NCBI GenBank assembly: GCA_002269645.1
Contig: NIVC01003617.1
Location: 1-64,000 of the forward strand
DNA length: 64,000 bases
Source of the DNA: Macrostomum lignano
Taxonomy: Eukaryota
Reading direction: 5' to 3'
Below are positions 15,001 to 54,796 of this stretch, piece after piece. The notes beneath the pieces are model-generated. The model was not told where the DNA came from. It saw nothing but the letters and a program-made list of their open reading frames with translations, and made no database searches. A program made the position numbers and the translations under genes. Within the stretch, counting starts at the first letter, position 1; every line of letters starts with the position of its first letter.

Positions 15001-18000
15001 TGATTTTTACATGACGCTTCTATGATTTTTACATGACGCTTCTATGATTTTTACATGACGCTTCTATGATTTTTTACATGACGCTTCCATGTTTTTTTAC
15101 ATGACACTTCTATGATTTTTTCATGACGCTTCTATGATTTTTACATGACGCTTCCATGATTTTTTACATGACACTTCTATGATTTTTACATGACGCTTCT
15201 ATGATTTTTACATGATGCTTCTATGATTTTTTACATGACGCTTCTATGATTGTTTACATGACGCTTCTATGATTGTTTACATGACGCTTCTATGATTTTT
15301 TACATGACGCTTCTATGATTGTTTACATGACGCTTCTATGATTTTTTACATGACGCTTCTATGATTGTTTACATGACGCTTCTATGATTTTTTACATGAC
15401 GCTTCTATGATATTTTCATGACGCTTCTATGATTTTTTATATGACGCTTCTATGATATTTTCATGACGCTTCCACGATTTTTTACATGACGCTTCTATGA
15501 TTTTTACATGATGCTTCTACAATTTCTGCAGTACGCTTCTATGATGTTTTACATGACGCTTCTATGATTTTTTACATGACGCTTCTATGATTTTTACATG
15601 ATGCTTCTATGACTTTTTACATGACGCTTCTATGATTTATACATAATGCTTCTACGATTTCTGCAGGACGCTTCTATGCTTTTTATATGACGATTCTATG
15701 ATTTTTACATGACACTTCTATGATTTTTACATGACGTTTCTATGATTTTTACATGACGCTTCTATGATTTTTTCATGACGCTTCTATGATTTTTACATGA
15801 CGCTTCCATGATTTTTTACATGACACTTCTATGATTTTTTGCATGACGCTTCCATGATTTTTTTATGACGCTTCTGTGATTGTTTATATGACGCTTCTAT
15901 GCTTTTTATATGACGCTTCTATGATTGTTTACATGACGCTTCTATGCTTTTTATATGACGATTCTATGATTTTTACATGACGCTTCTATGATTTTTTACA
16001 TGACGCTTCCATGATTTTTTACATGACACTTCTATGATTTTTTCATGACGCTTCTATGATTTTTACATGACGCTTCCATGATTTTTTACATGACACTTAT
16101 ATGATTTTTTGCATGACGCTTCCATGATTTTTTCATGACGCTTCTATGATTGTTTACATGACGCTTCTATGCTTTTTATATGACGATTCTATGATTTTTA
16201 CATGACGTTTCTATGATTTTTCCATGACGCTCCTATGTTTTTTTCATGACGCTTCTATGATTTTTTTCATGACGCTTCTATGATTTTTTACATGACGCTT
16301 CTATGCTTTTTACATGACGCTTCTATGATTATTTCATGACGCTTCTACGATATCTGCAGGACGCTTCTATGATTGTTTACATGACGCTTCTATGATTTTT
16401 ACATGACGCTTCTATGATTTTTTCATGACGCTTCTATGATTTTTTACATGACGCTTCCATGATTTTTTACATGACACTTTTATCATTTTTTCATGACGCT
16501 TCTATGATTTTTACATGACGCTTCTATGATTTTTACATGACGCTTCTATGATTTTTACATGACGCTTCTATGATTTTTACATGACGCTTCTATGTTTTTT
16601 ACATGACACTTCTATGATTTTTTCATGACGCTTCTATGATTTTTACATGACGCTTCCATGATTTTTTACATGACACTTCTATGATTTTTACATGACGCTT
16701 CTATGATTTTTACATGATGCTTCTATGATTTTTTACATGACGCTTCTATGATTGTTTACATGACGCTTCTATGATTTTTTACATGACGCTTCTATGATTG
16801 TTTACATGACGCTTCTATGATTTTTTACATGACGCTTCTATGATATTTTCATGACGCTTCTACGATTTTTTACATGACGCTTCTATGATTTTTACATGAC
16901 TTCTACGATTTTGCAGACGCTTCTATGATTTTTTACATGACGCTTCTATGATTTTTTACATGACGCTTCTATGATTTTTACATGATGCTTCTATGATTTT
17001 TTACATGACGCTTCTATGATTTTTACATAATGCTTCTACATTTCTGCAGGACGCTTCTATGATTTTTTCATGACGCTCCTATGATTTTTTCATGACGCTT
17101 CCATGATTTTTTACATGACGCTTCTATGATTTTTTACATGACGCTTCTATGATTTTTTACATGACACTTCTATGATTTTTCATGACGCTTCTATGATTTT
17201 TACATGACGCTTCCATGATTTTTTACATGACACTTCTATGATTTTTTGCATGACGCTTCTATGATTGTTTACATGACGCTCCTATGATTGTTTACATGAC
17301 GCTTCTATGATTTTTACATGATGCTTCTATGATTGTTTACATGACGCTTCTATGATTTTTTACATGACGCTTCTATGATTGTTTACATGACGCTTCTATG
17401 ATTTTTTACATGACGCTTCTATGATTGTTTACATGACGCTTCTATGATTTTTTACACGACGCTTCTATGATATTTTCATGACGCTTCTATGAATTTTTAC
17501 ATGACGCTTCTATGATATTTTCATGACGCTTCCACGATTTTTTACATGACGCTTCTATGATTTTTACATGATGCTTCTACGATTTCTGCAGGACGCTTCT
17601 ATGATGTTTTACATGACGCTTTTATGATGTTTTACATGACGCTTCTATGATTTTTTACATGACGCTTCTATGATTTTTTACATGACGCTTCTATGATTGT
17701 TTACATGACGCTTCTATGATATTTTCATGACGCTTCCACGATTTTTTACATGACGCTTCTATGATTTTTACATGATGCTTCTACGATTTCTGCAGGACGC
17801 TTCTATGATTTTTTACATGACACTTCTATGATTTTTTACATGACGCTTCTATGATTTTTACATGATGCTTCTATGATTTTTTACATGACGCTTCTATGAT
17901 TTTTACATAATGCTTCTACAATTTCTGCAGGACGCTTCTATGATTTTTTCATGACGCTTCTATGATTTTTTACATGACGCTTCTATGATTTTTTACATGA

Positions 18001-18947
18001 CACTTCTATGATTTTTTCATGACGCTTCTATGATTTTTACATGACGCTTCCATGATTTTTTACATGACACTTCTATGATTTTTTGCATGACGCTTCTATG
18101 ATTTTTACATGATGCTTCTATGATTTTTTACATGACGCTTCTATGATTGTTTACATGACGCTTCTATGATTTTTTACATGATGCTTCTATGATTGTTTAC
18201 ATGACGCTTCTATGATTTTTTACATGACGCTTCTATGATTGTTTACATGATGCTTCTATGATTTTTTACATGACGCTTCTATGATTTTTACATAATGCTT
18301 CTACAATTTCTGCAGGACGCTTCTATGATTTTTTCATGACGCTCCTATGATTTTTTCATGACGCTTTTATGATTTTTTACATGACGCTTCTATGATTTTT
18401 TACATGACGCTTCTATGATTTTTTACATGACACTTCTATGATTTTTTCATGACGCTTCTATGATTTTTACATGACGCTTCCATGATTTTTTACATGACAC
18501 TTCTATGATTTTTTGCATGACGCTTCTATGATTTTTACATGACGCTTCTATGATTTTTTACATGACGCTTCTATGATTGTTTACATGACGCTTCTATGAT
18601 TTTTTACATGATGCTTCTATGATTGTTTACATGACGCTTCTATGATTTTTTACATGACGCTTCTATGATTGTTTACATGACGCTTCTATGATTTTTTACA
18701 TGACGCTTCTATGATTGTTTACATGACGCTTCTATGATTTTTTACATGACGCTTCTATGATATTTTCATGACGCTTCCACGATTTTTTACATGACGCTTC
18801 TATGATTTTTACATGATGCTTCTACGATTTCTGCAGGACGCTTCTATGATTTTTTACATGACGCTTCTATGATTTTTTACATGACGCTTCTATGATTTTT
18901 ACATGATGCTTCTATGATTTTTTACATGACGCTTCTATGATTTTTTA
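1..18947. repeat. Satellite array, 22-bp monomer ATGACGCTTCTATGATTTTTAC (roughly 850 copies; continues beyond window start)
   Basis: Direct reading: period 22 (e.g. 3661 atgacgcttctatgatttttac|atgacg...). Almost invariant at ~4150-10050, variant monomers on both flanks, abrupt end at ~18947 into unique AT-rich DNA. Confidence 0.99.
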
Positions 18948-19552: not shown

Positions 19553-21345
19553 AAGTAGTGGCATTTCCCAGGGACCAAGGGTGTCTAGCTGTAGGTTTCT
19601 AGTTAGTTCATACTTCCTTTTTACTTTTGTGCCTATTACCTAGGCATAATTCTATTTGAGCTTGTACAGCTTCTTAATATTTCTATTCCTAGACCTTTAT
19701 GACCTTGGTAATTCCCTATTCCAAATTCATATTCTGGGCCTTAACAACCTTGGTAACTCCCTATTACCTAAAATAAATAAAATTCTAAAGCTTGAATTTT
19801 AAAAATCAATTGACTGCCTAACTAGCAGGGTTGGGAATAGTTATAATTTGAGCTCTTCTAGTTAGTTACTTAGTTAATGACAGCTAAACAATAAAAAATA
19901 ACCGCACAACAAATATAATAAATACTTTATAAAACATTTTATCTTTCTAATATCTATTTTGTTAATTAGGCCCTAGGCATATATCCTTAATTTTGAAAAA
20001 TCAATTTAATTTAATTGCTGTATAGAGATGCCCTACATAAGAATTTTGTCTGTGGATTGCTCTAGGCAATGAGTCATCAGCTTCATAGGAATTTTTGTGT
20101 TACATTGGATGTTTTTTGTCATTTAGGACATCTCTGAAAACAATCAAAGCATTTCAATGAAGATTTCAAGAAATTGGGCTACTTTTCCATAGACAAACCT
20201 CACTTATTTTCTTACTTAAATTTACCATAGGCTTAGGCCTAGTAAAGATACCTTCTTTTCTTACTGTGAATAAAGCAAACTTTTTTCTAATGAGGCTATA
20301 TTTGCACTGACGAACTTCACTTACTTAGATGAATTTGAAGTCACATTCTCTAAAAATTTATTATAGGCCTACCTAGACACTCATTCTCTTCCCCTTGAAT
20401 GCTATATAGTTTTGCATATGCTGGCAAATGAATTTGAACTCACTTTTGATGAATCCAAAGTTAAAAAGGTATATTAACTACAGTATAATACATATTAATA
20501 TACATTTTCAAATGCAACAATTGGTAAGATCAGACATAGTAGATATTTCAACCATAGGCCTAGAGTACACTTTTATATTTATGAATATTTGCTTGGTTTT
20601 TAATAAAGATAAGGCCAACAAAACTATAGATAATAATAAAATGCCTGTGGCTAGGGTCAGATAAAATTTTGATTGATAATTTGTCATCAAGATCTTGGCC
20701 ATTTTCTCAATCTCGAACTTGGTTTTGAAATCTAAAGAAACAAGTCAAGATTTCTAACTATAATCTAAGTAACTATTTGTGACTATGATTATTATATTTA
20801 TGTTTGATAATTATCAAGTTATTAACAAGGTCAATATTAGGCCTAAATAATCACTGCACATTTCCTTTCATCATCATTGGCATTGTACACATATAACAAA
20901 TAACATTATTATTTATTATCATTGAATTGAAAGCAGATAGAGTAGGCCCCTGTTGCAGGCGTGTCGGGGAAGTCGAGGAAATCCCACACATTTAAGCCAC
21001 AGTTGGGGTCGGACAATTTTCAAGATTGTCAAGACTCGATAGATATCTATTACTGTCAAGTGGGCCTATTTATTTACAACGTATTCATTTCAAGGTCGAT
21101 TGACATTCAGATTCACATTCAAATTTTAACAAGATTACTTAGATTATTTCTCAACGGAGGGTCTCCCTAAAACACGCCCCGCACCGCCCTGCAGCGCTAC
21201 ACATTAAAACAAATTGGACTATAACTGAAGACACTTCAAAATGCGTTTTCTGTTAAGCTTTAAAGTTTTTATTAAATTTAGTTTCTTAAATTCGAAATAT
21301 AAAATTCGGTGACTAATAAGTGATATTAATAGTAATATTACAGCC

Positions 21346-21390
21346 CAAGGACGACTTAAGTAGTTAAGTCGTCCACTTAAGTCGTCCTTG
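21346..21390. mobile_element. 45-bp hairpin mini-insertion with 15-bp perfect TIRs and 9-bp TSD
   Basis: CAAGGACGACTTAAG (21346-21360) / CTTAAGTCGTCCTTG (21376-21390), flanked by ATTACAGCC at 21337-21345 and 21391-21399. Confidence 0.75.
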
Positions 21391-21410
21391 ATTACAGCCC
21401 TGTTGACACG

Positions 21411-21671
21411 GAGCCTCTTCACGGCAATCGATTCCAGAACCAGAATCGGTTCGGATTTCCAAGAAAAAAAGCAGTATAACTATTTAACTTTGTTGAATGT
21501 TTGACTGCCTTAACAGCCTCACTTTGCACAATTTTTCACTTTTTTTTGGCTATTGCCATTCAATAATCACAATTTTAAAGCACTAATATCCCTCTAGTTT
21601 AGGAGACAAAAAGTTTTACTTTACAAATTGGTTCTGGTTCTAGAACCAGAACAAGCAATATGAAGAGCCTC
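21411..21671. mobile_element. ~260-bp MITE-like insertion
   Basis: Imperfect 11-bp TIRs GAGCCTCTTCA / TGAAGAGCCTC, candidate 3-bp TSD ACG, subterminal AGAACCAGAA motifs at both ends. Absent from the corresponding position near the right end of the large element. Confidence 0.55.
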
Positions 21672-22899
21672 ACGGATAAAGCCAAATTGAACATGATCGC
21701 TGACCGCCTTTAAGGCTGTTGCGAACAAGTTCTGTGTTCAAAGATTATGTTCGCAAGGCCTACTAAAGCCAACTAATATATTCAATCGGCTGGTAAAATT
21801 GCCGTCGATTTAAAATGAGCTAGGGGCCTAGACTATTATAGTTTTAGGCTAGGGTAAGGTTAAGTACAAGAGTCGTTACAGTTTAATACTAAGCCATTTC
21901 ATTATTGTTAAGCATTAGCAAGTAGTTAATATTTACTAGGCTTAGACACAACTGGACTAATTGACTAATAGGCCTAGTTCAAAAAGCTACCTTTGATATC
22001 AAGCAACTAGGCCTATTTCATTGTTAGAATTGAATTGCACTGTAAAATATAGTAAATATAGGCCAATGCAATTGACTTGTTCTGGTCTACTTTAGAATGA
22101 CAGGGATATATTATCTTTAGTTAAAAAGCTAGGATAGGCTATTAATGACTAGATATAAGTTGATAAGTTCTTTCTAATCTATATCTGGGCTTCTTGCCAT
22201 TTTGGTTGAAATTTATAGAGCCTAGGCCTATATAGCATATGCTAGGCCTATGACTAGTATAGCCTATTGGTTTTTATTGTAGCCATATAAAGGTAGGACA
22301 GACTAGGTCTAATCAAGTGTTATATATTATATGGACATATAGCTCATAGTCATATAGCTAGGTAGCTACTTTAGGCTATAAAAAGTTTAAATGTTATTAA
22401 TATTAGTGCTAGTAAATTATTTGTAGGGCCTATATTAAACAATTATAGTTCTAATTCTAGTATACCATATAATAAACATTTAAAATATTTTTTCGGTATA
22501 AGCCTAGTCTATTACTTTGTCTTTCATTAAAAAATTGAATAAAAAAGTTTTGCCTACTAAGCCCAAGGCTTAGCTAGGCTAGGCCCTATTATTCTTTTGA
22601 AATAATCTTTTATGACTATCTTACCTAGTTAGACTAGGCTAGTTTACCCCACTCAGTCTACTCTAATAAGGCTTCTCTATCTAGGTTATTTTTCTTTGGC
22701 TAGCCTTTATAATTATCCCTTAGGCTTAAGGGTGGATCTAAAAAAATTGTAGGAGACAAACTATACTAAGAAACTATAACCTAAAATTAGAAAATAGACC
22801 TTGGCCAAAATATATGACCTAGAGTTTTTTATCCATAGTTAAGGGAGATATCATGGCTATGGCCCCTTGGGACCCTTGGATCTATCCTTGCTATCTCTT

Positions 22900-24545
22900 C
22901 TAGGTAGCCTTTCTAGGCACTCCCCTCTAGACTATCTAGGCCATCTATTCTAGGCTATTCTTCTTAGGTAGTCCTTCTAGGCTGTCTTTCCTAGGTAGCC
23001 CTCCTAGACAGCTCCTCTAGGCTATCTCTCCTACTTTACCTTTCCCAGACAGCCCTATTAGGCTATCCCTCTATGGCTACCCTTCCTATTCAACCCCTTA
23101 GGCTTCCTCTTATTCTACCTCTCCCATTCTACTACTCCCAGACTATCCCTCCCAGACTACCCCTCCCGTTCTACCCTTCCCAGGCAGCCCTCCCATTCTA
23201 CCCCTCCCAGGCTACCTTTCCTAGGCTACCCTTCCCAGGCTACCTTTCCTAGGCTACCCTTCCCAGGCTACCTCTCCAATTCTACCCTTCCCAGGCTACC
23301 TCTCCCATTCTACCCTTCCCAGGCTACCTTCCCATTCTACCCCTCCCATGCTACCCTTCCCAGGCTACCCCTCCCAGGCTACCCTTCCCAGGCTACCCCT
23401 CCCAGGTTACCCTTCCCAGGCTACCCTTCCAATTCTACCCTTCCCAGGCTACCTCTCCCATTCTACCCTTCCCAGGCTACCTCTCCCATTCTACCCTTCC
23501 CAGGCTACCCTCCCATTCTACCCCTCCCATGCTACCCTTCCCAGGCTACCCCTCCCAGGCTACCCTTCCCAGGCTACCCCTCCCAGGCTACCCTTCCCAG
23601 GCTACCCTTCCAATTCTACCCTTCCCAGGCTACCTCTCCCATTCTACCCTTCCCAGGCTACCTCTCCCATTCTACCCTTCCCAGGCTACCCTCCCATTCT
23701 ACTCCTCCCATGCTACCCTTCCCAGGCTACCCCTCCCAGGCTACCCTTCCCAGGCTACCCCTCCCAGGCTACCCTTCCCAGGCTACCCTTCCAATTCTAC
23801 CCTTCCCAGGCTACCTCTCCCATTCTACCCCTCCCAGGCTACCCTTCCCAGGCTACCTCTCCCAGGCAATCCTTCCTGGCTACCCTTCCCAGGCTAGCCC
23901 TCCCAGGATAACCATCCGAGGATACCCTTCCCAGTGAGCTCTCAGCTCTCCCAAGCTACCCCGTCCAGTTTACCCCTCCCACTATACCCTTCCCAAGCTA
24001 CTTCTCCTATGCAACCCTCCCAGGCTATCCCCTCCTATGCAACTCTCCCAGGCTACCCCTTCCATCACAACCTCTTCCAGGCTCTCTCCCAGGCTACCCG
24101 TCCTAATCAAACCATCAGGCTCCTCTTTCCTACTCTTCCCCTCCTACTCTTCCCCTTCTACTCTACCCCTCCCAGGCGAACCTTCCCAGGCAGCCCTCCC
24201 AGCCTACCCCTCCTAGGCAGCCCTCCCTGCCTACCCCTCCCAGGCAGCGCTCCGAGACTACCCACCCCTCCCAGGCAGCCCTCCCAGCCTACCCCTCCCA
24301 GCCTACCCCTCCCAGCGTACCCCTCCCAGCGTACGCCTCCCAGCCAACCCCTCCTAGGCAGCCCTCCCTGCCTACCCCTCCCAGGCAGCGCTCCGAGACT
24401 ACCCCTCCTACTCTACCACTCCCAGGCAGCCCTTCAAGGCTACTCCTCCCAGGCTATCCTTCCCAGGCTACCTCTCCCAAAACCCCTTCCTGACTACTCC
24501 TCCCAGGCTACCCCTTCCATGGCAACCACTTCCAGGCTATCTCCC
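22900..24545 (+). repeat. C/T-rich minisatellite, 14-bp basic unit (CCCAGGCTACCCTT) with a 181-bp higher-order repeat
   Basis: Direct reading; identical ORF starts recur at 23348, 23529 and 23710 (181-bp spacing). Confidence 0.93.
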
Positions 24546-24807
24546 ACTGTGCCCCTGTGTACTGTCTCCATTTATGTTCGAAACTGAGAAGATTGTTTCG
24601 TTTTGGTATTATTTAAAAAGATAATGCATCATTATTTACTTCAGACGCTTCACTCTCATTATTTCTGGTGCGTACATGCGAGTCAGCTAACGCTGACGCC
24701 GCACTTAGTATTCGGCTTTCCAACGGGGAACTGTGCGTTTATGAAAGCCATTTAGGATTTGGGATGCCAGAAAAGAAATTCTATTTTGCAAGGATCCGAT
24801 GAATGCT

Positions 24808-24977
24808 GCCGCTTCGGCTGCAGTGACCACCGGCTCAAGCGGAGGCGATCGCAGGACTGTTTGCTGCCTGCCGCTTCGGCTGAAGTGACCGCCGGCTCAA
24901 GCGGAGGACGATCGCAGGACTGTTTGCTGCCTGCCGCTTCGGCTGAAGTGACCGCCGGCTCAAGCGGAGGACGATCG
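24808..24977 (+). repeat. 63-bp GC-rich tandem repeat, ~3 copies (inner end of left arm)
   Basis: gccgcttcggc recurs at 24808, 24870 and 24933. Confidence 0.95.
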
Positions 24978-25779
24978 CTGCTCGCGTGCTGTCATCCGGT
25001 TCCGCGAGGACCTTAACGAACAGTGGCATAGTGAGGGTTATTTAATAAACTATGGTTATGACCTGAACGATTGTCTGAAGTGATGCGTGTTTGTGTGACT
25101 CACACCCTGGCGATGCGCAGTCCTGTACCAGCAGCGGTTTGTAGTTGCTGTGTAGCTGCAGTTTCTGCGGGCAGCTCTATGTTGCGCGCATTACTTCAGT
25201 TGGTTTTGCGTAGCTGCATAAAGTTATTCTATCCAAGCGGCTCATCACCTTTGCGTTTATTGAGAGCTGTAAGTTTTTTGTCCTAATAGCAAATAAAAAA
25301 AGCATTTTTCTCGATCGATGTCACCCCGGTAATTTGGCTGTTGCGCCACGCATTTTCGCGCATATTTGGAAGTGTCCGAAGTCGCCCAAGTATTTTTCAC
25401 TTCGCGTTACACTTATTTCAGAAATTTCGCTCGCGCAAAAGAATTGACCAGATCGCAAGTCGCAGAGTTTGAAGTTTGGATCGCGGCGGCCTGAAAATTC
25501 TCTTATTCTGCTCAAAATGTTAAACTATCCTTAGCTAATGGCAAACTATCCACATAGTCTGGCTTATTTGCTACCTCAAGTAAGCTAGGTTTAAAAATAT
25601 CATTAAAGTTGGGTTGCATGAACAAGCGCGCACTAGCAAAAGCAAGCACGGCTAGAATGGAGATTAGCACAAGAGCGTATTGACACTGACGCAAGTATTT
25701 CACCTACATGTACATGTATGCTCAATCATGAATAAGTGCCAGTATGCACACGAGTATGTTTGACTTAGCTGCAGAGGGC

Positions 25780-26390
25780 ATCACCGAGGCGCAGGGGTGG
25801 GGGCCCCAGCTGGGCCCGGTCCAGAAGCGCGCCGGCGGAGCCAGCCTTGCCGAGATGGAAACCATAACATCGTGGGCCGGGATCCGCTTGAGCTCCACCT
25901 GGTTGCCCAGCGCAAGCCCATGGAGCCGGGCGTTGCAGTCCAGGGACAGATCTGGAGTTGGTGGTGCTGCAGCAGACGGCCAGAATGGTTGCTTGGCTGT
26001 CGGAGTGAAAAATAAATTTCTGACTGCAAGCTAAACTGCCTTCGACGCAGCTCTGCCACACAGAAGCTGATGGCAAGCACCTCGCTCTGAAAAACACTGT
26101 AATTGAGTCCCAGTGTGCTGCCATTAGGTAGTGATGTAACCGCACTTGTCGCCTGTCCGCTCCGTTGAGGGACGAACGCATGACTAGAGGGGGGCAATGA
26201 CCGTAGGCTGCCTTGACCGGGCAATGACCTGACGGACCTCCAGCACCAGACTGTCCCGCCCACATGCAGATTGATAGCTTTGGTAGCGCTTCGTGACCAG
26301 AGGGCCAAGGACCCACATGGACCCCACCTGTAGCCAAGGTGCAATAGTTGGTCTCTCGGTCATAGTATGACCGAGTGGCTGCCACCACTC
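25780..26390 (-). pseudogene. Frameshifted RNase H domain remnant of a non-LTR retrotransposon (R1/LOA/I-like)
   Basis: Motifs split over frames: GQSGAG, VFQSEVLAI (cf. VFQAEVxAI), IFHSDSQATILAV (cf. IFSDSQAAL). Confidence 0.75.
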
Positions 26391-26539
26391 TATGTGACCT
26401 GGCGCACCTGGATCTTACTACCAGACCTCTCGAGGCTAGAGCCCCGCCTTGGTTGGTTACCAGGGGATTTAGGCTAACAGGGGAGACACATGCAGCCGAG
26501 TTACAGGGAACTCTGCTTGGGGCATGATCGGGAAATCTG

Positions 26540-26880
26540 GGCTCAATCTGGAGGATTTCTCAGCAGGGGATCCTTTTGTGGCTGTGAGCGAGGCTGACTT
26601 GCGACTTTGATTACTATCGAGTAGTATGAGGCGAACATGTACTGTCTATGGTTTAGATTGCTCAGGGCGAAGGGACGCGTCAGCATGGGGTTGCAACCTT
26701 CCTACTGCCATTCTGTGCCAAGACTCGCTGATTCCCTCTATACTGCATGCAACACACGGACCCGCAGCACGCACTCACAGGCGGACTTTGCACGGGGAGA
26801 GGCCATTAGCTTACCCAAACTTCCTTATGCTTCGCCACCCCGGGAGAAAGGCTTAGCAAGCCATGGGTGAAATGATGGTG
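26540..26880 (+). pseudogene. Degenerate APE-endonuclease remnant of an RTE-like LINE
   Basis: VAVSEADLR, then CSGRRD / QHGVATFLL across a frameshift, resembling the GLSEVRW ... SGRED..HxHGVG motifs. Confidence 0.4.
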
Positions 26881-29590
26881 AAAGAGTGAATAATGATGAG
26901 GTTAGTTAATAATTAATAATTAGGCCCTTAGGCAAATAATCAGGCAATTAGGCGGCTTCACTATTGAGTAAAAGTACAGCAAAAGATACGGTATCACAAT
27001 TGGCTCAGCTCTCTAATCAAGCAATGGAAAATAGGCAAACCCCGGATAAGCAAAGGCAATTAGAGCACAAAATAGTAACAGAAACTTACCGGCAGCTGCA
27101 CAGAGAGAGAGAGAGCGATGGAGTGACCGAGGACGGCTGTAGGCTGCAGTCAGGCAGACAGTGAAGCGGCGATGCGCTGAAGCGACGAGGCGCTGATGTA
27201 GATCAGGCGATGCTGATGTTGCTGGGCGGTATCAGACCGTTGGCCGATAGGCGAGCTCATTTTGGGAGCTAAGGTGACTTGGCGGTATCAGACAGCGGGC
27301 CGGCAGGGATTCGCCCTATAGACGAATAGGTCAGAGCTACGTCTGACAGCAAGTCTAAAGAAAGACGAGGAGCCCGAAGGTTGAGGATTCTCATGCCGAA
27401 ATCGCTTCCTTATATAGCCTTCCCAGCCGCCGCTCCAAGGTCGTTACCATGACTCCCTCTCTCTGATTGGCTGCCGGCAGAATGACGTCAGAATGAGTCA
27501 TGATGAGAAGCATGAGACCGGCATAGCAACATGAGAAATGGGAGAATTGCGCAATCCGGAGGCGGCGTGGGGGATAATTGGCGCAGCGGGAGGCCGCGAA
27601 AGTGTTGCGCAATCAAACATTGAGAACAATGGGGCGGGGGTCGAGAACAAAGGAATTGGAAATCGGGGATAATTGGGGAGAACCGAGAACAATAGAAAAG
27701 CAAACATTGGAGAAAGGTGATAATTGCGAAAGGTGCGAAAATGAGAACAATAGAAAGAGAAAATCGGAGAAAATGTGATAATTGGTGGGGATAAAGAGAA
27801 CAAAAGAATAAAAAACGAGAACAATAGAAGCGGAGGTGGGGTGGGTGTCGCATGAGAAATTTGGGGAGGAGAACAATAGCATAAGAAAAGGTTGCGCAAG
27901 AGAGGGGAATAAGTCGTCGATGAGTCATCGAGGGGATAGAGGGGTCACACGACCTGCGTCACCGTTTGGGAGTTTGAGAAGGGATGGGGGCGGTGAGCAC
28001 ACAAAATACTGTAAGTAGACGCAGGGAAAGGGGGACAGCGCAGGAAAATAGTGCAGAAAGAGACAAAAAGAGAGAAGGCAGGAAAATTACACGAAGAATA
28101 GAGGGAAGCGCAGAGGAGATAGGGTAGAAGGGGAGGTACAGAGAGGGGTAGGGAGCTCCGGAAAGGCAAGTGTGGCGGCAGGGGAGACGGAGCCAAGGCA
28201 GCAGGAGGTGCAGCAGAGCGGTAGTCTGCAGGCCTGGTCGAAGACCTTAGCCCAGTCTCGACGGCTCTGCGCAGGGGGTGCACGGCGATGAGCGGGACCC
28301 TTCGAAAAAGTTTCCCTACCAGAGCGTGGTTACATCAGTAGTTAATAATACATGTACCTTTGCACGCTTAATATTTAACAACAAAACTTATCTCTACTTT
28401 TGCCACTTTAATTTACTGATTGCAAGTGGATCCACACGCAGCCGTGGAGTGGATTGGAGCATAAGAAAACTCCAGCGTTGGAGCGAGTACTGGAGCTGAT
28501 ATAAACGTCCAGTACTGGAGTTTCGGTTTTGGCACTGGAAAAGTGCAGATAACTCTTTTGGATGACCTTCTGGCGCTCTGGGACCGGCGCCAATCGACTC
28601 AGGGAGCCGAAATCTATCAGAAAATGTTGGGCGCATAGGCGCTAAAGCCACTCTGCAAAATGCCAAAATGTTGTATCCTCCCCGCCGGCCTAGGTGCACT
28701 TGTCAAATCTGCACCTGATCAACCTGCTGTCAGTAAAGATTCTGCAAGTAAACCGTCTGTCCTGCAACTTGCAACTAATCAAAACTACGCAAGCCGCTGA
28801 GCAGTGTCGCACTAAACTGCACGCTAAAATCGACCATCAATCTAGTATTGGAGTCTGCAAGGCTCTAATGCTGGAGTTTCCTTTATATTCCACTACTGGA
28901 GTTACGCCAAAATGCACTTCTTTCCGAGCCATACGACTGTAAGATATATATGCTAGTATCAGAGAACTCCGTATAAACTGTAAAAGGCAAACATAGATGG
29001 CTATAACAAAGTTAGCATATATACAGGCCAGGTGTTTGAAAGAAACATTCAGCTACGGCTTCAGTTTGCGAAGTCGGTGAGAGCAAACGGGGGTTAATTG
29101 CCTGGACGTCTCGGGAATCTCACCATGCCTTTATACATGTAGATGAAGTTGGCCAGCCTTCGAGACACTTGCACAGCCGATCTGCATGGGTCCAGTTGAA
29201 CATGGAAAATTTTTTCAAGGATCTTCTCAAATGCAAGCACGGAAGTGTTAGCGCAACGCTGCCCAGAATCAAGAGAATGGGCATGACAGAAGCAGCTGCA
29301 AAGAACTCTCTATAGTAGTGAATTCTCTACAAGCAGTGGAAGTATGACCAGGCAAGTTTGTTTCAATGATTCGACCAGTCTGACAAATTTTATTTGTGTG
29401 AACGTAGTCACTGTAATAAATAAAGGCTTTTCCTCGGTAGAAAATCGAGCAACGTGGATAAACTTACATGTAGCTCGTCAAAACTGACATTCTCTTCAAT
29501 TCATCGGTGACATCATGCTGACAACATGCGGATGGCGAAGCTTGAAGTTGTAGTCGTGAAGTTGAAAAGGCAATTAACGGGAGCACGAGA

Positions 29591-29806
29591 ATTTCCCGCA
29601 GGAATTTTTCCCGCCGAGCTTTCTCCGCAGGAGCTTTCCCGCAAGAGATTCTCCCGCAGCGAGTTTTTACCGCAGCGAGAGTTTCCCGCAGGAAATTTCC
29701 CCGTCGAGATTTTCCCGCCGAGCTTTTACCGCCCAGATTTTCCCGCACGAATTTTCCCCGCAGACTTTTTCCAGCAGAAAGATTTTCCCGCAAGAAATTT
29801 CTCGTG
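29591..29806 (+). repeat. Degenerate ~15-bp tandem repeat built on a TTTCCCGC core (~14 copies), followed by a (CTGT/CTGC)n microsatellite
   Basis: atttcccgca, ttttcccgcc, ctttcccgca, gtttcccgca, etc., read directly. Confidence 0.85.
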
Positions 29807-31472
29807 ATTGCCTGTTTACCTTCCTACCTTCCTACCTGTCTGTCTGTCTGTCTGCCTGCCTGCCTGGCTGCCTGTGTCGAATTTATCAAAAGAAAATCGC
29901 GTCTCTGCTAGCTTTCCTTTTTATAATTTCTTTCTTAAGGTAAACTTATTCTTATTCTTCTTATTCTCATAGACCCGCAATTAACGCCTCCTCGCTGCGT
30001 CCGGATGCCTGGAACCCCTGCAGCTAAGTCAAGTAACCCTCTACTACTGTACACAACTCTCAAATCTGCTCAATAACTTGCATGTAGATAGTGCATGTGC
30101 ACTTGCCAAGCAGAGAGAAGGCTAAACACTTCTACCCGGTATTGTGCTTCTCAGTTCAAATACGTATTTAAGAAATTAATAACATGCAATCCGTGTTTCC
30201 CATTCAAGTTATTTTCAGCAGTACAGCATTTTTGCGCCCCCTCATAATTGGTACCCCTCATACTCATGTTGGCCTCCCAAACTTGGACCGCCCCCTCCCA
30301 AAATGAAATTCTAGATCCGCCATTGCTCGTGCATGATAAGACTAACTGAATTTACTATTACTAATATACCTATACAGTGTTTAACCAACAGGTGCTGCAG
30401 AGACAGAGGGCGAGAAGGAGAAAGGGAGGCCAAGAGGGGTAGACAAACTATTGAGACTACTGTAATGTAAAATCATATACTTTATACCTCTCGCCCTATG
30501 GCTCTACCTCCAACTATTCTTTGTGACCGTCGTGTGACCATATTTGTGTCATCAAAGAGAATTCGATAAAACAGGAATGTTTCAGAACAGGACAGAGTGA
30601 ATTATCGTAAAAAGCATAGGTAAAAGCAGTGCAGCCTGTTTTATTTTAGAGTCACATGTTTATAATACCAGGTTTGGCGAAAAAACGCGCTGCATAGTTC
30701 TCTCAAAGTTTGATTAGCAAAACTCGACAGGGGGGACAAAAACTGGTTACAGCAGTACAGAGCGAGAGAAAGAGGGTCACCGTTTGATGGTAGTGAAATA
30801 TTGCAAAGAGGTCACGGATTAAATGTTCTACATGCCACAGTCACAGAGAAGTGTGACCAAACATATTTAAACGGCTAACAGCTAATTTCTGTCCAATGTG
30901 GCTGAATAGTCATACATGTCGTAGTCGTCACTGTCGTCTTCTTTCTGAGATCCTTCTACGAGGATCCTGCGTGCACTCTGCGTTCTGTGCATCGGCAGCA
31001 GCGTAATGCACATTGCTTTGTCTCATCTCGACACCTGCCAAGAATGAGAGAAAAATTCCTTGTATTTAAAATGCAAATGCATGGTGAAAAGCATTCCAAT
31101 ACAGTTCATAGCTAATCTGTATTGTTAGCACTTGATGCTGGAGTGACTATGAGCGGAGAAGCTGAATAGGTTATGTACGCGACCAAAACAATTCACTGAT
31201 TTCACTAGGAAGAAGCTAAATACATGCCATCTTACCATCTACGTACTCTTTTTGTTTCAAACGACCTCATTTAACGAATTCTGCTGATGATATTGTAGAG
31301 TGTATAAGCGGCAGCACATAATACTCATATTTTTTACTCACTGCTAATTCCACGCGAAGATAAATAACTGGCAAAGATTTCCTCTGAAGGAAATCTGATA
31401 ATATGCTCCTTCATTAGTCCTTCGTTCGCCCTTAGCACTCGCAACACTCGTAGATGATAGCACGCGGAGCAG

Positions 31473-31770
31473 CGATCGTCCTCCGCTTGAGCCGGTGGTC
31501 ACTGCGACAAGCGGCAGGCAGCAAACAGTCCTGCGATCGTCCTCCGCTTGAGCCGGTGGTCACTGCAGCCGAAGCGGCAGGCAGCAAACATTCCTGCGAT
31601 CGTCCTCCGCTTGAGCCGGTGGTCACTTCAGCCGAAGCGGCAGGCAGCAAACAGTCCTGCGATCGTCCTCCGCTTGAGCCGGCGGTCACTTCAGCCGAAG
31701 CGGCAGGCAGCAAACAGTCCTGCGATCGCCTCCGCTTGAGCCGGTGGTCACTGCAGCCGAAGCGGCAGCA
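31473..31770 (-). repeat. 63-bp tandem repeat, ~5 copies (inner end of right arm)
   Basis: cgatcg(t)cctccgcttgagccgg at 31473, 31534, 31597, 31660 and 31723. Confidence 0.95.
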
Positions 31771-32029
31771 TTCATCGGATCCTTGCAAAATAGAATTTCT
31801 TTTCTGGCATCCCAAATCCTAAATGGCTTTCATAAACGCACAGTTCCCCGTTGGAAAGCCGAATACTAAGTGCGGCGTCAGCGTTAGCTGACTCGCATGT
31901 ACGCACCTGAAATAATGAGAGTGAAGCGTCTGAAGTAAATAATGATGCATTATCTTTTTAAATAATACCAAAACGAAACAATCTTCTCAGTTTCGAACAT
32001 AAATGGAGACAGTACGCAGGGGCACAGTG

Positions 32030-33930
32030 GGAGATAGCCTGGAAGTGGTTGCCATGGAAGGGGTAGCCTGGGAGGAGTAGTCAGGAAGGGGTTTTGGGAG
32101 AGGTAGCCTGGGAAGGATAGCCTGGGAGGAGTAGCCTTGAAGGGCTGCCTGGGAAGGGTAGCCTGGGAGGAGTAGTCAGGAAGGGGTTTTGGGAGAGGTA
32201 GCCTGGGAAGGATAGCCTGGGAGGGGTAGAATGGGAGGGCTGCCTGGGAGGGGTAACCAGGAAGGATTGCCTGGGAAGGGTAGCCTGGGAGGGGTAGAAT
32301 GGGAGAGCTGCCTGGGAAGGGTAGCCTGGGAAAGGTAGCCTAGGAGGGGTAGAATGGGAGGGCTGCCTGGGAAGGTCAGCCTGGGAGGGGTATAATGGGA
32401 GGGGTAGAATTGTAGGGCTGCCGGGGAAGGATAGCCAGGAAGGATTGCCTGGGAAAGGTAGCCTGGGAAGGGTAGCCTGGGAGGGCTGCCTAGGAAGGGT
32501 AGCCTGGGAGGGGTAGAATGGGAGGGCTGCCGGGGAAGGATAGCTTGGGAGAGGTAGCCTGGGAAGGGTAGCCTGGGAGGGGTAGCCAGGAAGTATTGAC
32601 TGGAAGGAGTCTGGGAGGGCCTGGGAGGGCTGCGGCTGCCTAGGAAGGGTAGCCTGGGAAGGGTAGCCTGGGAAGGGTAGCCTGGGAAGGGTAGCCTGGG
32701 AAGGGTAGCCTGGGAGGGGTAGCCTGGGAAGGGTAGCCTGGGAGGGGTATAAAGGGATGGGTAGAATTGTAGGGCTGCCGGGGAAGGATAGCCAGGAAGG
32801 ATTGCCTGGGAAAGGTAGCCTGGGAAGGGTAGCCTGGGAGGGCTGCCTAGGAAGGGTAGCCTGGGAGGGGTAGAATGGGAGGGCTGCCGGGGAAGGATAG
32901 CTTGGGAGAGGTAGCCTGGGAAGGGTAGCCTGGGAGGGGTAGCCAGGAAGTATTGACTGGAAGGAGTCTGGGAGGGCCTGGGAGGGCTGCGGCTGCCTAG
33001 GAAGGGTAGCCTGGGAAGGGTAGCCTGGGAAGGGTAGCCTGGGAAGGGTAGCCTGGGAAGGGTAGCCGGGGAAGGATTGCCTGGGAAAGGTAGCCTGGGA
33101 AGGGTAGCCTGGGAAGGGTAGCCTGGGAGGGGTAGAATGGGAGGGCTGCCTAGGTGCCTAGGAAGGGTAGCCTGGGAGGGGTAGAATGGGAGAGCCGCAA
33201 GGAAAGGGTAGCCTGGGAGGGGTAGAATGGGAGGGCTGCCTAGGAAGGGTAGCCTGGGAGGGGTAGAATGGGAGGGCTGCCTAGGAAGGGTAGCCTGGAA
33301 GGGGTAGAATGGGAGAGCTGCCTGGGAAGGGTAGGCTGGGAAGGCCGAAGGGTAGCCAGGAAGGATTGACTGGAAGAGGTAGCCTGGGAAGGATAGCCTG
33401 GGAGGGGTAGAATGGGAGAGCTGCCTGGGAAGGGTAGCCTGGGAGGGGTAGCCAGGAAGGATTGCTTGGAAGAGGTAGCCTGGGAAAGGTAGCCTGGGAG
33501 GGGTAGAATTGGAGGGCTGCCTGGGAAAGGTAGCCAGGAAGGATTGCCTGGGAGAGGTAGCCTGGAAGAGTAGCCTGGGAGAGGTAGAATGGGAGAGCTG
33601 CCTAGGAAGGGTAGCCAGGAAGTATTGCCTGGGAGAAGTAGCCTAGGAAGGGTAGCCATAGAGAAGTAGCCTAATAGGGCTGTCTGGGAAGGGTAGCAGC
33701 CTAGGAGAGATTGAATGGGAAGGATAGCCTAGGAAGGCTACTTGGGAGAGGTAGAGTAAGAAAGGTAGCCTAGAGGGGCTGTCTAAGAGGGCTGCCTTGA
33801 GGGTTTGCTTAGAAGGGCTACCTAAGAAAGATAGCTTAGAAGGACTACCTGGGAGGAATAGCCTAAAATAGAGAGCCTAGATGTCCTGGAAGGGGAACCT
33901 AGAAGGGCTACCTAGAAGAGGTAGCAAGGG
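32030..33930 (-). repeat. G/A-rich minisatellite, 14-bp unit GGGAAGGGTAGCCT, with a ~357-bp internal duplication
   Basis: Pure units at 32641-32730; marker aagtattgactggaaggagtctggg at 32591 and 32948. Confidence 0.93.
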
Positions 33931-36900
33931 AGATCCAAGGGTCCCAAGGGGGCATAGCCATGATATCCTTCTTAACTATGGTTAAAAAACTTTGGATCAT
34001 ATTTTTGGCCTATAACTATATAAGTGCAAGGTCTATTTTCTAATTTTAGGTTATAGTTGCTTTGTATAGTTTGCCCTTTTCAAATTTCTCTAGATATTTC
34101 CTTGAAAGATAATTATAAAGGCTAGCCAAAGAAAAATAGCTTAGAATAAAGAAGCCTAGCTAGAATAAACTAGATTAGGTAGACTAAGTGAGGTAGACTA
34201 GCCTAGTCTAACTAGGTAAGGTAGTCATAAAGGTTGTTTAAAAAAGAATAATAGCCTAGCTAAGCCTTGGTAAGCTATAGTATAGGCAAAACTTTTTTAT
34301 TTACTTTTTTAACTTTAACAACAAAGTAATAGGCTAGGCCTATACTAACAAAATATATTTGTTAAATGTTCATAGTAGTATAGTAGGCTCTATACTAGAA
34401 TTAGAACTAGAAATGTTTATGTTTAATATAGGCTTTACAAATAATTTACTTGTCTAGGCCTAATATTAATAACAAAAACTTTTTTATACTTATAGTCTAA
34501 AGACAAAGTAGCTACCTAGCTATATGAGCTATATGTCCATATAATATATAACACTTGATTAGACCTAGCCCTACCTTTAGATGGCTACAATAAAAACCTA
34601 TACTAGCCATAGATAAGCCTAGCATATGCTATATATAGGCCTAGGGCTGGGGCTAGGCTCTAAAATTTCAACCAAGAAGCCCAGATATAGATTAGAAAGA
34701 ACTTATCTTATCAACTCATATCTAGTCATTATTAGCCTATCCTAGCCTTCTAACTAAAGATAATATATCCCTGTTATTTTAAAGTAGACCAGAAAATGTG
34801 AATTGGCCTATACTATAGTACAATTAAATTCCAACAATGAAATAGTTGCTTGATATCAAAGGTAGCTTTTTGAACTAGGCCTAGTCAATTAGTCCAGTTG
34901 TGTCTAAGCCTAGTAAAGGTAAAGATTAACTACTTGCTAATGCTTAACAATAATGAAATGGCTTAGTATTAAACTGTAACGACTCTTGTACTTAACCATT
35001 ACCCTAGCCTAAAACTATTAGTACTTAGGACTTTCTATCTAGGCCCCTAGCTCATTTTAAATCGACGGAAATTTTACCAGCCGATTGAATATATTCGTTG
35101 GCTTTAGTAGGCCTTGCGAACATGATCTTTGAACACAGAACTTGTTCGCAACAGCCTTAAAGGCGGTCAGCGATCATGTTCAATTTGGCTTTATAAAGCG
35201 GCGTATCTGTCAACACGGGTGAATATTAATAAAATAATAATAATATAATTTAGTAATGAAAACGAGAATATAAAAAATAATAATAATATTTAAAATAATA
35301 ATTAAAGATATTTATTACAGTACTCTTACAACAAATTGTTTTCTTTGAAATCAAATTCTGCATTGACAAAAAATGTTATAATGTGTAGCGGTTCGGGGCG
35401 GTGCGGTGCGTGTTTTAGGGAGACCCCTCAACGGATATTTTTTTCTTCAAACAGATAATTAAAACAAAAATGAATTCATGTTTCAGAAATCGAATCATGA
35501 GGCATTCTCTACTCTGACGCCATATTCAGCTTTAAAATAATATAAGTGGAAATTTTTTGTCCTAAAGAAAAAACATTGGCACGAATACAAATTGTGTGTT
35601 TAAAGAGATGAATTTTAGTAGTAGTAAATTTGGCTCAGGCTTAAGGAGCCTGTTATGCCAGTATGATCCGATTTATTTATTCAAAAGGTTAAATTTTACA
35701 CGGTCGCTGAAAACGAGTACTACACGATATTTGTATTAAGTAAGGTATTTGAAAGGGCGTCAAGAATTTTTTTACGGTTTTTTTAGCCGATTAACGACTA
35801 AAGACGGAAGCAGCAAGAATCTAAGCAGGGAAAAATAGAAAATCGATGTTGTATATATATGACCTTAATGCAAAACGATTCTTCTAAAATGCGATTCAGA
35901 AAAGGTAGTTAAATATTATTTTGTCAATATAACAAATATCTAGTATAATTGAGGATTATAATTGAGGGGAAAAAAAGAATTTTAGTGAATTTAGAAGTAT
36001 TTGTTTGACAGAATAATATTTAACTACTCTTTTTGAATCGCATTATAGAATAATCGCTTTGCATCGATCAAGGTCATACGGTATCGGTTTTTTATAATTT
36101 CCTACTTAAAATCTTGTTGTTCTGTTGTTAGTCGTTAGTCGTTCGAAAATACCGTAAAAATTCCAGACGCTCTTTCAAATACCTTACTTATACAGATCAT
36201 TTTTAGAAAGCTCTTGAGGTTTACATTGCAGATAATCAGCGTGATAAATAGTTCAATTTTTACTTTACATCAGCGGCCTGGCTAAACAAAAGAATCATTT
36301 TGTCAATCATAAAAGACTCGTCATGTAAATCATAAAATGAATTGTCATATGTCAGCTAGCCATAAAAGACTTTCTAAAGATGCCAATTAAGGTTAATAGG
36401 AGGGAATTGCTGAGTTGCCAACGCTCATGGGGAAATCGCTAAAATTCTGTGGCTAAATGCTCATGAAGAATCGCTGAGATGTCAACGGCTTTCGGAGGAG
36501 GTTTGGTGCAATGTACGTTGCACATGGCTTTTGATTATGAGATGTCAAGGTTCATTTGGGAAAGGAAGAATTTGTTTCAGAATAACCTACACTTGTGGGT
36601 TTTGAACAATTTTACAGCCACAACTGTTAGTAATTAAGGAAAATAATGTTGAAAGCAAAAAAGCATCCTAAGCTCCCATAGCAAATCACCCTTTGAGCTT
36701 TGGCTGAGCATCTGAGCAACCTCTCCAAGAGCCACAGCGTTTTAGGAATCCCCATGCACGAGACTTTTACATTTCAGAAATCCCCTTCGAGACTTTTCCC
36801 AAACAAAAATGTGACAACGCAAAACTGCCGTCAAAAAGAAACGCACCAGCTCAGCTACTGTGTAATTACAAAGCGTGCATCACACACCGTACTCAACAGC

Positions 36901-37251
36901 CTCTCACACTACGACGCCTGATATTCTGACGTAAGGAGCCTTGAAGGAAGATGCGCCTCAGAAGCCTACATCAGCAGGAGATTTCCGCGCTGTCGATGCA
37001 CAACGATCGAGGGTCAAGTAAGAGCTAACAAGAGAGTGACCCTAAGTGACCCAGTCGATGTTCACCTAGTGGGAGGGAACTGAAGTCTCAGTCGTTCTCA
37101 AGCGAGTCCACCAACAGTCCGACAGGTTCTGCGGGGTGAGGGCTCAGTGGGCTGACTTATAGAAGGCTGCGTGCCAACACCGCACTCCACAAACTCAGCA
37201 AAGCCTCAAGGAGCGGGAAAACAGACGGACGCCCGCCCGCTCGCCGCGACA

Positions 37252-38735
37252 GATGGCTCGCTCACAGACAACACACCAGATGGCTCGCTCACAGAAACAA
37301 CACACCAGATGGCTCGCTCACAGACAACACACTAGATGGCTCGCTCACAGACAACACACTAGATGGCTCGCTCACAGACAACACACTAGATGGCTCGCTC
37401 ACAGACGACACACTAGATGGCTCGCTCACAGACAACACACTAGATTGCTCGCTCACAGACAACACACTAGATGGCTCGCTCACAAACAACACACCAGATG
37501 GCTCGCTCACAGAAACAACACACTAGATGGCTCGCTCAACAGACAAGACACCAGATGGCTCGCTCACAGACAACACACTAGATGGCTCGCTCACACACAA
37601 CACACCAGATGGCTCGCTCACAGACACAACACACTAGATGGCTCGCTCACAGACACAACACACTAGATGGCTCGCTCACACACAACACACCAGATGGCTC
37701 GCTCACAGACACAACACACTAGATGGCTCGCTCACACACAACACACCAGATGGCTCGCTCACAGACACAACACACCAGATGGCTCGCTCACAGACACAAC
37801 ACACCAGATGGCTCGCTCACAGACACAACACACCAGATGGCTCGCTCACAGAAACAACACACCAGATGGCTCGCTCACAGAAACAACACACCAGATGGCT
37901 CGCTCACAGACAACACACCAGATGGCTCGCTCACAGACACAACACACTAGATGGCTCGCTCACAGACACAACACACTAGATGGCTCGCTCACAGAAACAA
38001 CACAACAGATGGCTCGCTCACAGAAACAACACACCAGATGGCTCGCTCACAGAAACAACACACCAGATGGCTCGCTCACAGACACAACACACTAGATGGC
38101 TCGCTCACAGAAACAACACACTAGATGGCTCGCTCACAGAAACAACACACTAGATGGCTCGCTCACAGACAACACACTAGATGGCTCGCTCGCAGACACA
38201 ACACACTAGATGGCTCGCTCACAGACACAACACACCAGATGGCTCGCTCACAGACACAACACACTAGATGGCTCGCTCACAGACACAACACACTAGATGG
38301 CTCGCTCACACACAACACACCAGATGGCTCGCTCACAGACACAACACACCAGATGGCTCGCTCACAGAAACAACACAACAGATGGCTCGCTCACAGACAC
38401 AACACAACAGATGGCTCGCTCACAGAAACAACACACTAGATGGCTCGCTCACAGACACAACACACTAGATGGCTCGCTCACAGAAACAACACAACAGATG
38501 GCTCGCTCACAGAAACAACACACCAGATGGCTCGCTCACAGACACAACACACCAGATGGCTCGCTCACAGAAACAACACACCAGATGGCTCGCTCACAGA
38601 CACAACACACCAGATGGCTCGCTCACAGACACAACACACTAGATGGCTCGCTCACAGACACAACACACTAGATGGCTCGCTCACAGAAACAACACAACAG
38701 ATGGCTCGCTCACAGACACAACACAACAGATGGCT
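37252..38735 (+). repeat. Minisatellite of 27/29-bp units (GATGGCTCGCTCACAGACACAACACACCA), ~52 copies
   Basis: Direct reading; the overlapping periodic ORFs are by-products. Confidence 0.97.
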
Positions 38736-39650
38736 GTCAAGTGTTGTCAAGTCGCTGAAGAATCCCAGAATTTATGACTTTATGTGCTCAGCTCCAATTT
38801 TGTTGTCCAGCACAGAAAACACTTATAAACTTCAAGTAATTTACAGGCCAGTAATCTCAGTTGTAGGTATGCAGATATTTCTCTTCCCGACACAGCCGAT
38901 CAATAGTGCTACCTTCATAAAGCGAAGTTAATTACGTAAAAATACCCACAGGGAAGTCAAGTCATAAGCTAACATTGGAGCGAAATTCATTGCTTTCACA
39001 GATTGATTCAATTCAGGGAGTGGCGACAATAAACAGTTCCCAGCCTTCTTGCATTGCCACTCAGTTGAGATGTAGCAGGCAATTAACAAATTGCAAGGCT
39101 GGTCTGCTCCCAGATTTCTGCTTAGATCCTATATGCCAAAACTGGTTTGTTTATTCCTGGAAATGTTTCATTTGGCACCGTATATGAAAATGTAGATTTA
39201 CGTGCAACCGATAAAAGATTTAATTTTAATTCAATCAAATTTCAGTCACTTTCCAATCTTTTTCCCATCCTTTTCCCGTCTTTTTCATCCTTTCCCCAAA
39301 TTTTTCCCCGCCTTTTCCCATTCTTTCCCCATCTTATTACCATTCGAATGACTCTTATTTTATTTTACTAATTTTAGCGTTTGCATTAAGCTCTGCCGGC
39401 TTCTTAAGATTTCATTATAAATATAATTCTTTCAAACAACTCATTCGGCGAAAAGCAATAGTCTATGGCCAACAAATTTATGATCATCAATAAACCCGTT
39501 GGGATATCGAAGATGAAAATTATTCAGCATTTGAGCACCCAAATCGTTTGGGCAGCAACTAAAAATTTGTCGAATCCTGTTGCGGTAACGCCTAAAAGCA
39601 AATCGTGAGATCGGTTAAATAATTGTCCAAGTCAACAGTACCGACTCAAA

Positions 39651-54734: not shown

Positions 54735-54796
54735 GGCTATTTAAACATGGTGGATCTGCAGTGCTGAGGCCTGACGCAGCAGGACTCCCCACTCAC

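Follow-up and report, generated by a model that had tools for sequence, protein, structure and literature searches.

A 14.3-kb foldback-type insertion with short terminal inverted repeats in one homeologous copy of a Macrostomum lignano locus

The locus described here raises the question of whether a 14.3-kb block of DNA with long inverted arms entered its present site as a single transposon or was put together there in stages. It lies in the flatworm Macrostomum lignano, on contig NIVC01003617.1 of assembly GCA_002269645.1, whose positions 1 to 64,000 (forward strand) form the window, that is, the whole 64,000-nucleotide stretch that was analysed. The block spans 21159-35426 (14.27 kb), and a first-pass annotation had described it as a Foldback/Mutator-like element with a 9-bp target site duplication (TSD), short terminal inverted repeats (TIRs), inverted arms of several kilobases around a spacer, and no transposase. 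We conclude that the segment is probably one non-autonomous, foldback-type class II transposon that moved whole, with the Mutator-like/Foldback group as its most likely home.

This conclusion begins with a sister locus. The genome of M. lignano, a neopolyploid, comprises three homeologous subgenomes, which are separated by a single-nucleotide polymorphism (SNP) divergence of 1.9-2.4% and by many long insertions, the latter making up most of the difference between them (PMC10733133). The homeologous contig NIVC01000445.1 (L002) contains an exact empty site, with a single CTCAACGGA at L002 2731-2739; its junction reads ...ttagattatttCTCAACGGAtattttt... and, in longer context, ...cttagattatttCTCAACGGAtattttt.... 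Aligned to the window, L002 matches 19553-21158 and then continues directly at 35427, the two alignments overlapping by exactly 9 bp, which are CTCAACGGA. The single-copy allele to which the first-pass annotation had pointed is therefore present, and the segment is an insertion relative to the sister locus, bounded precisely by its TIRs. Between filled and empty sites the flanks show a substitution identity of 98.5% on the left and of 97.6% and 99.4% on the right (about 1.5% divergence, with about two gaps per kb), and a further 6.3 kb (38736-45002), which takes in an 833-aa open reading frame (ORF), is likewise 98.5% identical. Identity of this order is what has been published for the homeologous subgenomes of the species (1.9-2.4% SNP; PMC10733133). 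Since L002 combines an exact empty site with homeolog-level flank identity, the insertion is younger than the subgenome split, that is, younger than about 1.5% sequence divergence. At the target position the other two copies of the locus (L003 and L004) have a deletion together with small, unrelated elements, and so give no information on the empty site.

The ends of the element are equally well defined. The TSD is perfect over its 9 bp on both sides, as had been claimed, and the 9-mer CTCAACGGA occurs three times in the window against 0.41 expected. The TIRs begin with GGG and pair over a 47-bp core (43/47) that can be extended to 48 of 53 positions, which bears out the 53-bp repeats of the first-pass annotation. 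Their 19-nt tip, GGGTCTCCCTAAAACACGC, is found within the window only at the two element ends, even with up to three mismatches allowed (0.01 expected). The exact TIRs, the 9-bp TSD and the intact empty site are together what a DDE cut-and-paste transposition leaves behind when the target is cleaved with a 9-bp stagger. When JGI metagenome contigs were scanned for exact matches to the same 19-nt tip, there was one match, on a GC-rich, bacterial-looking contig where similarity ends with the 19-mer itself; we regard it as a chance match.

Inside the TIRs lie the inverted arms, which pair, by blastn and repeat search, between 21676-24978 and 35194-31596 and are 3.6-3.8 kb long; multi-kilobase arms around a 6.5-kb centre had been correctly described. 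Once two nested inserts are removed from the left arm, homology reaches approximately 21332 and 35232 and then fades. Each arm contains 1.4-1.6 kb of a 14-bp minisatellite together with 63-bp repeats, so that recognisable tandem repeat amounts to about 40% of an arm; the outer 1.5 kb or so is not recognisable as tandem repeat, and the arrays begin about 2 kb from the element tips. The earlier term "minisatellite-built" is apt for this fraction and overstated for the arms as a whole. Between each TIR and its arm is an AT-rich subterminal segment (Table 1). The two segments align no better than shuffled sequence (global z = 1.6; 37 of 500 shuffles score at least as high), as the first-pass annotation had indicated, but part of what it had placed in the left one proves to be two small, arm-specific insertions.

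It is the divergence between the arms that bears on whether they travelled with the TIRs. The arm middle (6.5% substitutions, 45 indels per kb) has diverged about four times as far as the flanks of the filled and empty sites and has far more indels, and the higher-order periods of the minisatellite arrays differ between the arms (181 versus 357 bp). For these two reasons we suggest that the inverted duplication predates the insertion, in which case an in-situ inverted duplication after insertion is excluded, provided that rates are comparable. The inverted structure is thus probably older than the insertion and moved as one unit. The first-pass annotation had allowed that the element "moved, or grew" as a unit; the divergence pattern favours movement, whereas growth by in-situ inverted duplication falls away under the same proviso about rates. 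Near-identical patches at the two extremities of the paired region seem best explained by gene conversion between arms.

In the sequence of events we envisage, a donor copy already possessed long inverted arms that had already diverged. A transposase supplied in trans would have recognised the 47-bp TIRs, and the whole 14.27-kb segment would have integrated at CTCAACGGA through 9-bp staggered cuts, the repair of which would have produced the duplication; this would have happened after the homeologous subgenomes diverged. The minisatellite arrays of the two arms may then have evolved separately; stretches of the arms would have been homogenised, probably by intramolecular gene conversion, and two small elements would later have inserted into the left arm.

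The centre of the element accords with a dependence on transposase from elsewhere. A six-frame Pfam scan of 24900-31700, with stops masked, gave no match at E<=0.1, and the element is therefore non-autonomous and without transposase, as first described; neither Rfam over the entire window nor a tRNA scan between 19000 and 37000 gave a match. An ORF at the inner end of the right arm (31432-31815, minus strand) matches three M. lignano UniRef clusters representing five distinct sequences. By tblastn these five gene models map to 31728-31340 and 31056-30961. In at least five further gene models of M. lignano (UniProt A0A1I8... entries, which we take to come from an earlier assembly), the 63-bp arm repeats are joined to the rightmost 500 bp or so of the centre (30961-31458). 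The arm/centre junction thus exists in several other genomic copies, which would place the element in a multi-copy family. Because it travels with the arm in five other gene models, the right edge of the "spacer" is better regarded as family sequence than as cargo.

Nor is a captured spacer borne out by the rest of the centre. One further piece, at 25822-26110, is a decayed, frameshifted repeat fragment, and no host-gene fragment was found: the six-frame Pfam scan is empty, and the only similarities at protein level are to portions of M. lignano gene models that derive from repeats. The gene-model segments akin to the decayed fragment (P0008, P0011 and P0014) contain, by eye, RNase H-like motifs typical of retroelements; P0008 and P0011 have no Pfam match at E<=0.001. 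The region at 25.8-26.4 kb itself yields nothing against Pfam on raw frames and RT_RNaseH at E = 0.042 after manual frameshift repair, which is a hint, and only a hint, of a retroelement RNase H fragment. Pieces homologous to 25822-26110 are also fused into unrelated M. lignano gene models that bear the names sodium-dependent multivitamin transporter and ANK-repeat protein; repeat contamination of these models is suggested. Exact-sequence look-ups of the element ORFs and of the UniRef matches returned no contigs. A single homology query made of a 4,290-aa concatenation of all open segments from arms and centre returned no matches, missing the known matches of the inner-arm ORF as well, and is uninformative.

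Table 1. Features of the insertion at 21159-35426 and of its target site (window coordinates)
Feature	Position	Strand	Remarks
Left TSD copy, CTCAACGGA	21150-21158		adjoins element end; single copy in L002
Right TSD copy, CTCAACGGA	35427-35435		adjoins element end
Left TIR, 47 bp	21159-21205	+	starts GGGTCTCCCTAAAACACGC; 43/47 against reverse complement of 35380-35426
Right TIR, 47 bp	35380-35426	-	pairs with 21159-21205
Left AT-rich subterminal segment, 131 bp	21206-21336		no detectable match to right segment
Right AT-rich subterminal segment, 147 bp	35233-35379		no detectable match to left segment
Left inverted arm	21332-24983	+	AT-rich outer part, 14-bp minisatellite, unique inner part, 63-bp repeats
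Right inverted arm	31467-35232	-	63-bp repeats, 14-bp minisatellite, AT-rich outer part
Left 14-bp minisatellite, CTACCCCTCCCAGG	23115-24539		higher-order period 181 bp
Right 14-bp minisatellite, complement of CTACCCCTCCCAGG	32035-33657		higher-order period 357 bp
Left 63-bp repeats, inner arm end	24806-24978		2.8 copies
Right 63-bp repeats, inner arm end	31472-31768		4.8 copies
Central region, ~6.5 kb	24984-31466		no protein domain in any frame
Decayed frameshifted repeat fragment	25822-26110	-	61-65% protein identity to stretches of three further M. lignano gene models
Arm-to-arm identity, outermost 157 bp	21676-21832		98.1% substitution identity, 0 gap events
Arm-to-arm identity, AT-rich middle	21833-22890 vs 35037-33925		93.5% substitution identity, 45 gap events
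Arm-to-arm identity, inner 582 bp	24397-24978		98.5% substitution identity, 0 gap events
45-bp palindromic insert	21346-21390		9-bp direct repeat ATTACAGCC at 21337-21345 and 21391-21399
261-bp MITE	21411-21671		ACG at 21408-21410 and 21672-21674; left arm only

Several observations weigh against transposition as one unit in a Mutator-like family. The arms stop short of the termini, leaving roughly 130-150 bp of non-homologous sequence between TIR and arm on each side, a gap that would also suit a short TIR element enlarged by acquiring much internal DNA. Some 130 kb of other M. lignano sequence (the window outside the element plus L002-L004) contains neither another complete copy with TIRs nor any further piece of the element, apart from the nested miniature inverted-repeat transposable element (MITE) of its left arm. 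The timing argument presumes similar mutation rates in the flanks and in an AT-rich, indel-prone arm, and the structure is known from assembled sequence. As to the superfamily, Merlin elements fit the TSD length and architecture too.

The gap between TIR and arm is the chief reason to consider an origin in two steps, in which a TIR element of about 0.4 kb, made up of the 47-bp TIRs and the two unique subterminal segments, inserted at CTCAACGGA and subsequently gained an inverted structure of about 13.9 kb, by a nested foldback insertion or by acquisition during gap repair, so that the whole never moved. The non-homology of 21206-21336 and 35233-35379 makes the arms structurally separate from the TIRs, as this account would have it, and the arm/centre junction that recurs in other gene models is known there without their termini. 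Against it, no TSD was found at any plausible boundary of the outer arm ends, and there is no sharp edge, homology instead fading gradually into AT-rich sequence. Both events would also have to fit into the short time since the subgenome split, the homeolog being fully empty, and the arms are already 6.5% diverged, which makes an in-situ inverted duplication after insertion unlikely. Since the outer arm ends lack a TSD or a crisp edge and nesting requires two events in a short time, we consider transposition as one unit the probable course and the two-step origin unlikely.

A second alternative accepts that the element moved as one unit and places it in a different DDE superfamily, such as Merlin. 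The 9-bp TSD narrows the choice; it suits Mutator-like elements (Foldback, Phantom and Rehavkus types), whose TSDs are about 9 bp with a range of 8-11, and it suits Merlin too. Merlin (IS1016-like) elements make 8- or 9-bp TSDs, have TIRs of 24-462 bp whose terminal 5'-GG is conserved, and occur in flatworms (PMC8101967), all of which suits an element that starts with GGG and has a 9-bp TSD. On the other side, the pairing of long arms of short tandem repeats with 9-bp TSDs is documented as a distinguishing mark of MULE (Mutator-like element), Foldback and Rehavkus elements in animals (PMC5225508, PMC3169594, bioRxiv 10.1101/2024.12.02.626372), one survey of Merlin describes nothing similar and no multi-kilobase tandem-repeat arms (PMC8101967), the element lacks DDE_Tnp_IS1595, and the TIRs of Schmidtea MULEs are of nearly equal length to those found here (42-46 bp; PMC6446971). 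The tandem-repeat arms would thus favour Mutator/Foldback over Merlin. Judged by TSD length and architecture, a Mutator/Foldback-like affiliation appears most likely, and Merlin or another DDE superfamily quite improbable.

An assembly artefact, the inverted structure being the product of a chimeric or palindromic mis-join of long reads, deserves mention in a draft assembly of which an independent study classed 36% of the length as subgenome-chimeric scaffolds (PMC10733133), yet it is scarcely credible here: palindromes from missed PacBio adapters have near-identical arms and no spacer, whereas these arms differ by 6.5% substitutions and dozens of indels, enclose a 6.5-kb centre, differ in array organisation and carry arm-specific nested insertions; the TIRs and TSD are precise, excision restores the homeolog sequence exactly, and the arm/centre junction is also present in the separately deposited UniProt gene models (A0A1I8... 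entries).

Transposition as one unit, our preferred reading, may also be part of something larger. A giant non-autonomous foldback family may have been active after genome duplication, its 47-bp ends allowing a resident transposase to move more than 14 kb, including several kilobases of unrelated DNA; this is a tentative suggestion, somewhat doubtful on present evidence. If it is true, such a family could be a driver of large homeolog-specific insertions and a possible high-capacity vector system in a flatworm in which transgenesis is already established. More immediately, M. lignano is a model for regeneration and stem cells with a repeat-rich, neopolyploid genome, and the locus offers a clean, dated case of a 14.3-kb transposon in one copy of a duplicated locus that is precisely absent from the sister copy. 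Because the element is present in the one and precisely absent from the other, a cut-and-paste transposase capable of moving very large substrates would have been active after the subgenomes diverged. Identification of the family and its transposase would aid genome annotation, help to explain structural divergence and possibly provide an endogenous transposon tool; long inverted arms being recombinogenic, such elements are also possible hot-spots of rearrangement.

Smaller elements have also been at work at this locus. The left arm alone bears a 45-bp, perfect-ended palindrome (CAAGGACGACTTAAGT...ACTTAAGTCGTCCTTG), which resembles a second element, likewise with 9-bp TSDs, that has been reduced to its TIRs. 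The 261-bp MITE in the same arm ends GAGCCTCTTCA.../...TGAAGAGCCTC, and independent copies (88.5% identical) occur at L003 6748-6981 and L004 1648-1881. These adjoin the homologous site in both contigs, and the MITE family therefore appears to have inserted more than once around the locus. A further element of about 350 bp, with TIRs of about 60 bp (AACATTCGCCGACACTTATTCAGACACTTCTACAGACAC...), lies at approximately L003 6366-6713 and L004 1266-1613; since it and the MITE replace window positions 21138-21158 and 35427-35991, the target site is deleted from these two copies. L002, in turn, has its own 3.3-kb insertion (L002 2941-6212, ends CCCGC...GCGGG), 200 bp downstream of the empty site at the point corresponding to window position 35637; missing from the window, it is another homeolog-specific insertion.

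The remainder of the window is also rich in repeats. A 22-bp satellite, TTCTATGATTTTTACATGACGC, extends over about 19 kb (6-18945; approximately 765-855 copies, 94% matches) up to the contig start, its other end lying 2.2 kb before the insertion site; among the alignments listed, none of at least 150 bp joins it to L002, L003 or L004. Just upstream of the 833-aa ORF, 52 copies of a 29-bp minisatellite form an array (37250-38735), part of which lies in an open frame, a 163-aa repeat ORF (38440-38931); this array is also present in L002, L003 and L004 and looks shorter in the last two. The ORF itself (39651-42152, plus strand) is a single exon of the Mlig018065 family without a Pfam domain. Its 90% cluster comprises four M. 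lignano proteins on four contigs (Mlig018065.g1, g3 and g4 and the window copy), and the representative is 99% identical to the window copy. Farther along are tandem arrays of (GGGATAT)n, with about 104 copies at 53972-54736, and of a 35-bp repeat, with 25 copies at 58301-59181, followed on the minus strand (59949-60728) by an exon-like ORF in which Pfam recognises two RPEL repeats (PF02755, E = 4e-13), as in RPEL-bearing actin-binding regulators.

It remains to set the element beside known systems. A limited literature search turned up no account of foldback or Mutator elements from Macrostomum. Foldback elements are recognised by long inverted arms made largely of short tandem repeats, and the M. 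lignano element agrees with this in its long arms with their minisatellite and 63-bp repeats; its arms do not form the termini, TIR and arm being set apart by 131 bp on one side and 147 bp on the other. Drosophila FB and FB-NOF elements have a 9-bp TSD, multi-kilobase inverted arms of tandem repeats, and a variable central loop able to carry unrelated DNA. Their arms consist of repeats up to the termini, whereas the M. lignano element has discrete 47-bp TIRs and unique subterminal segments outside its arms, an arrangement that we regard as somewhat unusual. Composite 'TE' units bounded by FB elements are described in Drosophila (PMC6431247).

Closer in repeat structure are the type 2 Foldback MULEs. 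Muta1 and other MULEs of Aedes aegypti have 8-9-bp TSDs, subterminal tandem repeats of 9-15 bp, and non-autonomous derivatives with heterogeneous interiors (PMC5225508), and Tm1 of Meloidogyne has 9-bp TSDs and TIRs built of 14-bp repeats (PMC3169594), the same unit length as in M. lignano. As a group they share with our element an 8-9-bp TSD, tandem repeats of 9-15 bp in inverted ends, short unique terminal motifs outside the repeats, and non-autonomous copies with heterogeneous, non-coding interiors. They differ in being about 1-3.5 kb long, with TIRs of about 0.1-0.5 kb and repeats that begin a few bases from the tip, as against 14.3 kb, arms of 3.6-3.8 kb, arrays about 2 kb from the tips and a 130-150-bp gap between TIR and arm. 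The size is large for a non-autonomous element that apparently moved recently, and is likewise somewhat unusual. Arm length as such is not unusual, contrary to the first-pass annotation: foldback-type elements with tandem-repeat arms are already described, including some with inverted termini of more than 11 kb (bioRxiv 10.1101/2024.12.02.626372; PMC3169594; PMC5225508).

Termini of that length are reported for Rehavkus and Rehavkus-like elements (Tribolium; bioRxiv 10.1101/2024.12.02.626372; PMC6446971), which also make a 9-bp TSD. Compared by description, Rehavkus is defined by a DDE transposase with a PHD finger, is known from arthropods and annelids, and has a minisatellite that precedes the 3' TIR, whereas the M. 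lignano element has minisatellites in both arms, about 2 kb from the ends. The flatworm MULEs (S. mediterranea group 16 and Curupira of Schistosoma; PMC6446971, Table 1) come from the same phylum and share the 9-bp TSD, with TIRs in S. mediterranea of 42-46 bp against 47 bp; again by description, they are autonomous, with a single ORF and SWIM/FLYWCH fingers, and lack long arms. Pack-MULE-like gene capturers carry host gene fragments inside, and none was detected in the interior examined here. The kind of element is therefore one already known, and the exact empty site on the homeologous contig makes this locus a well-documented new example of it.

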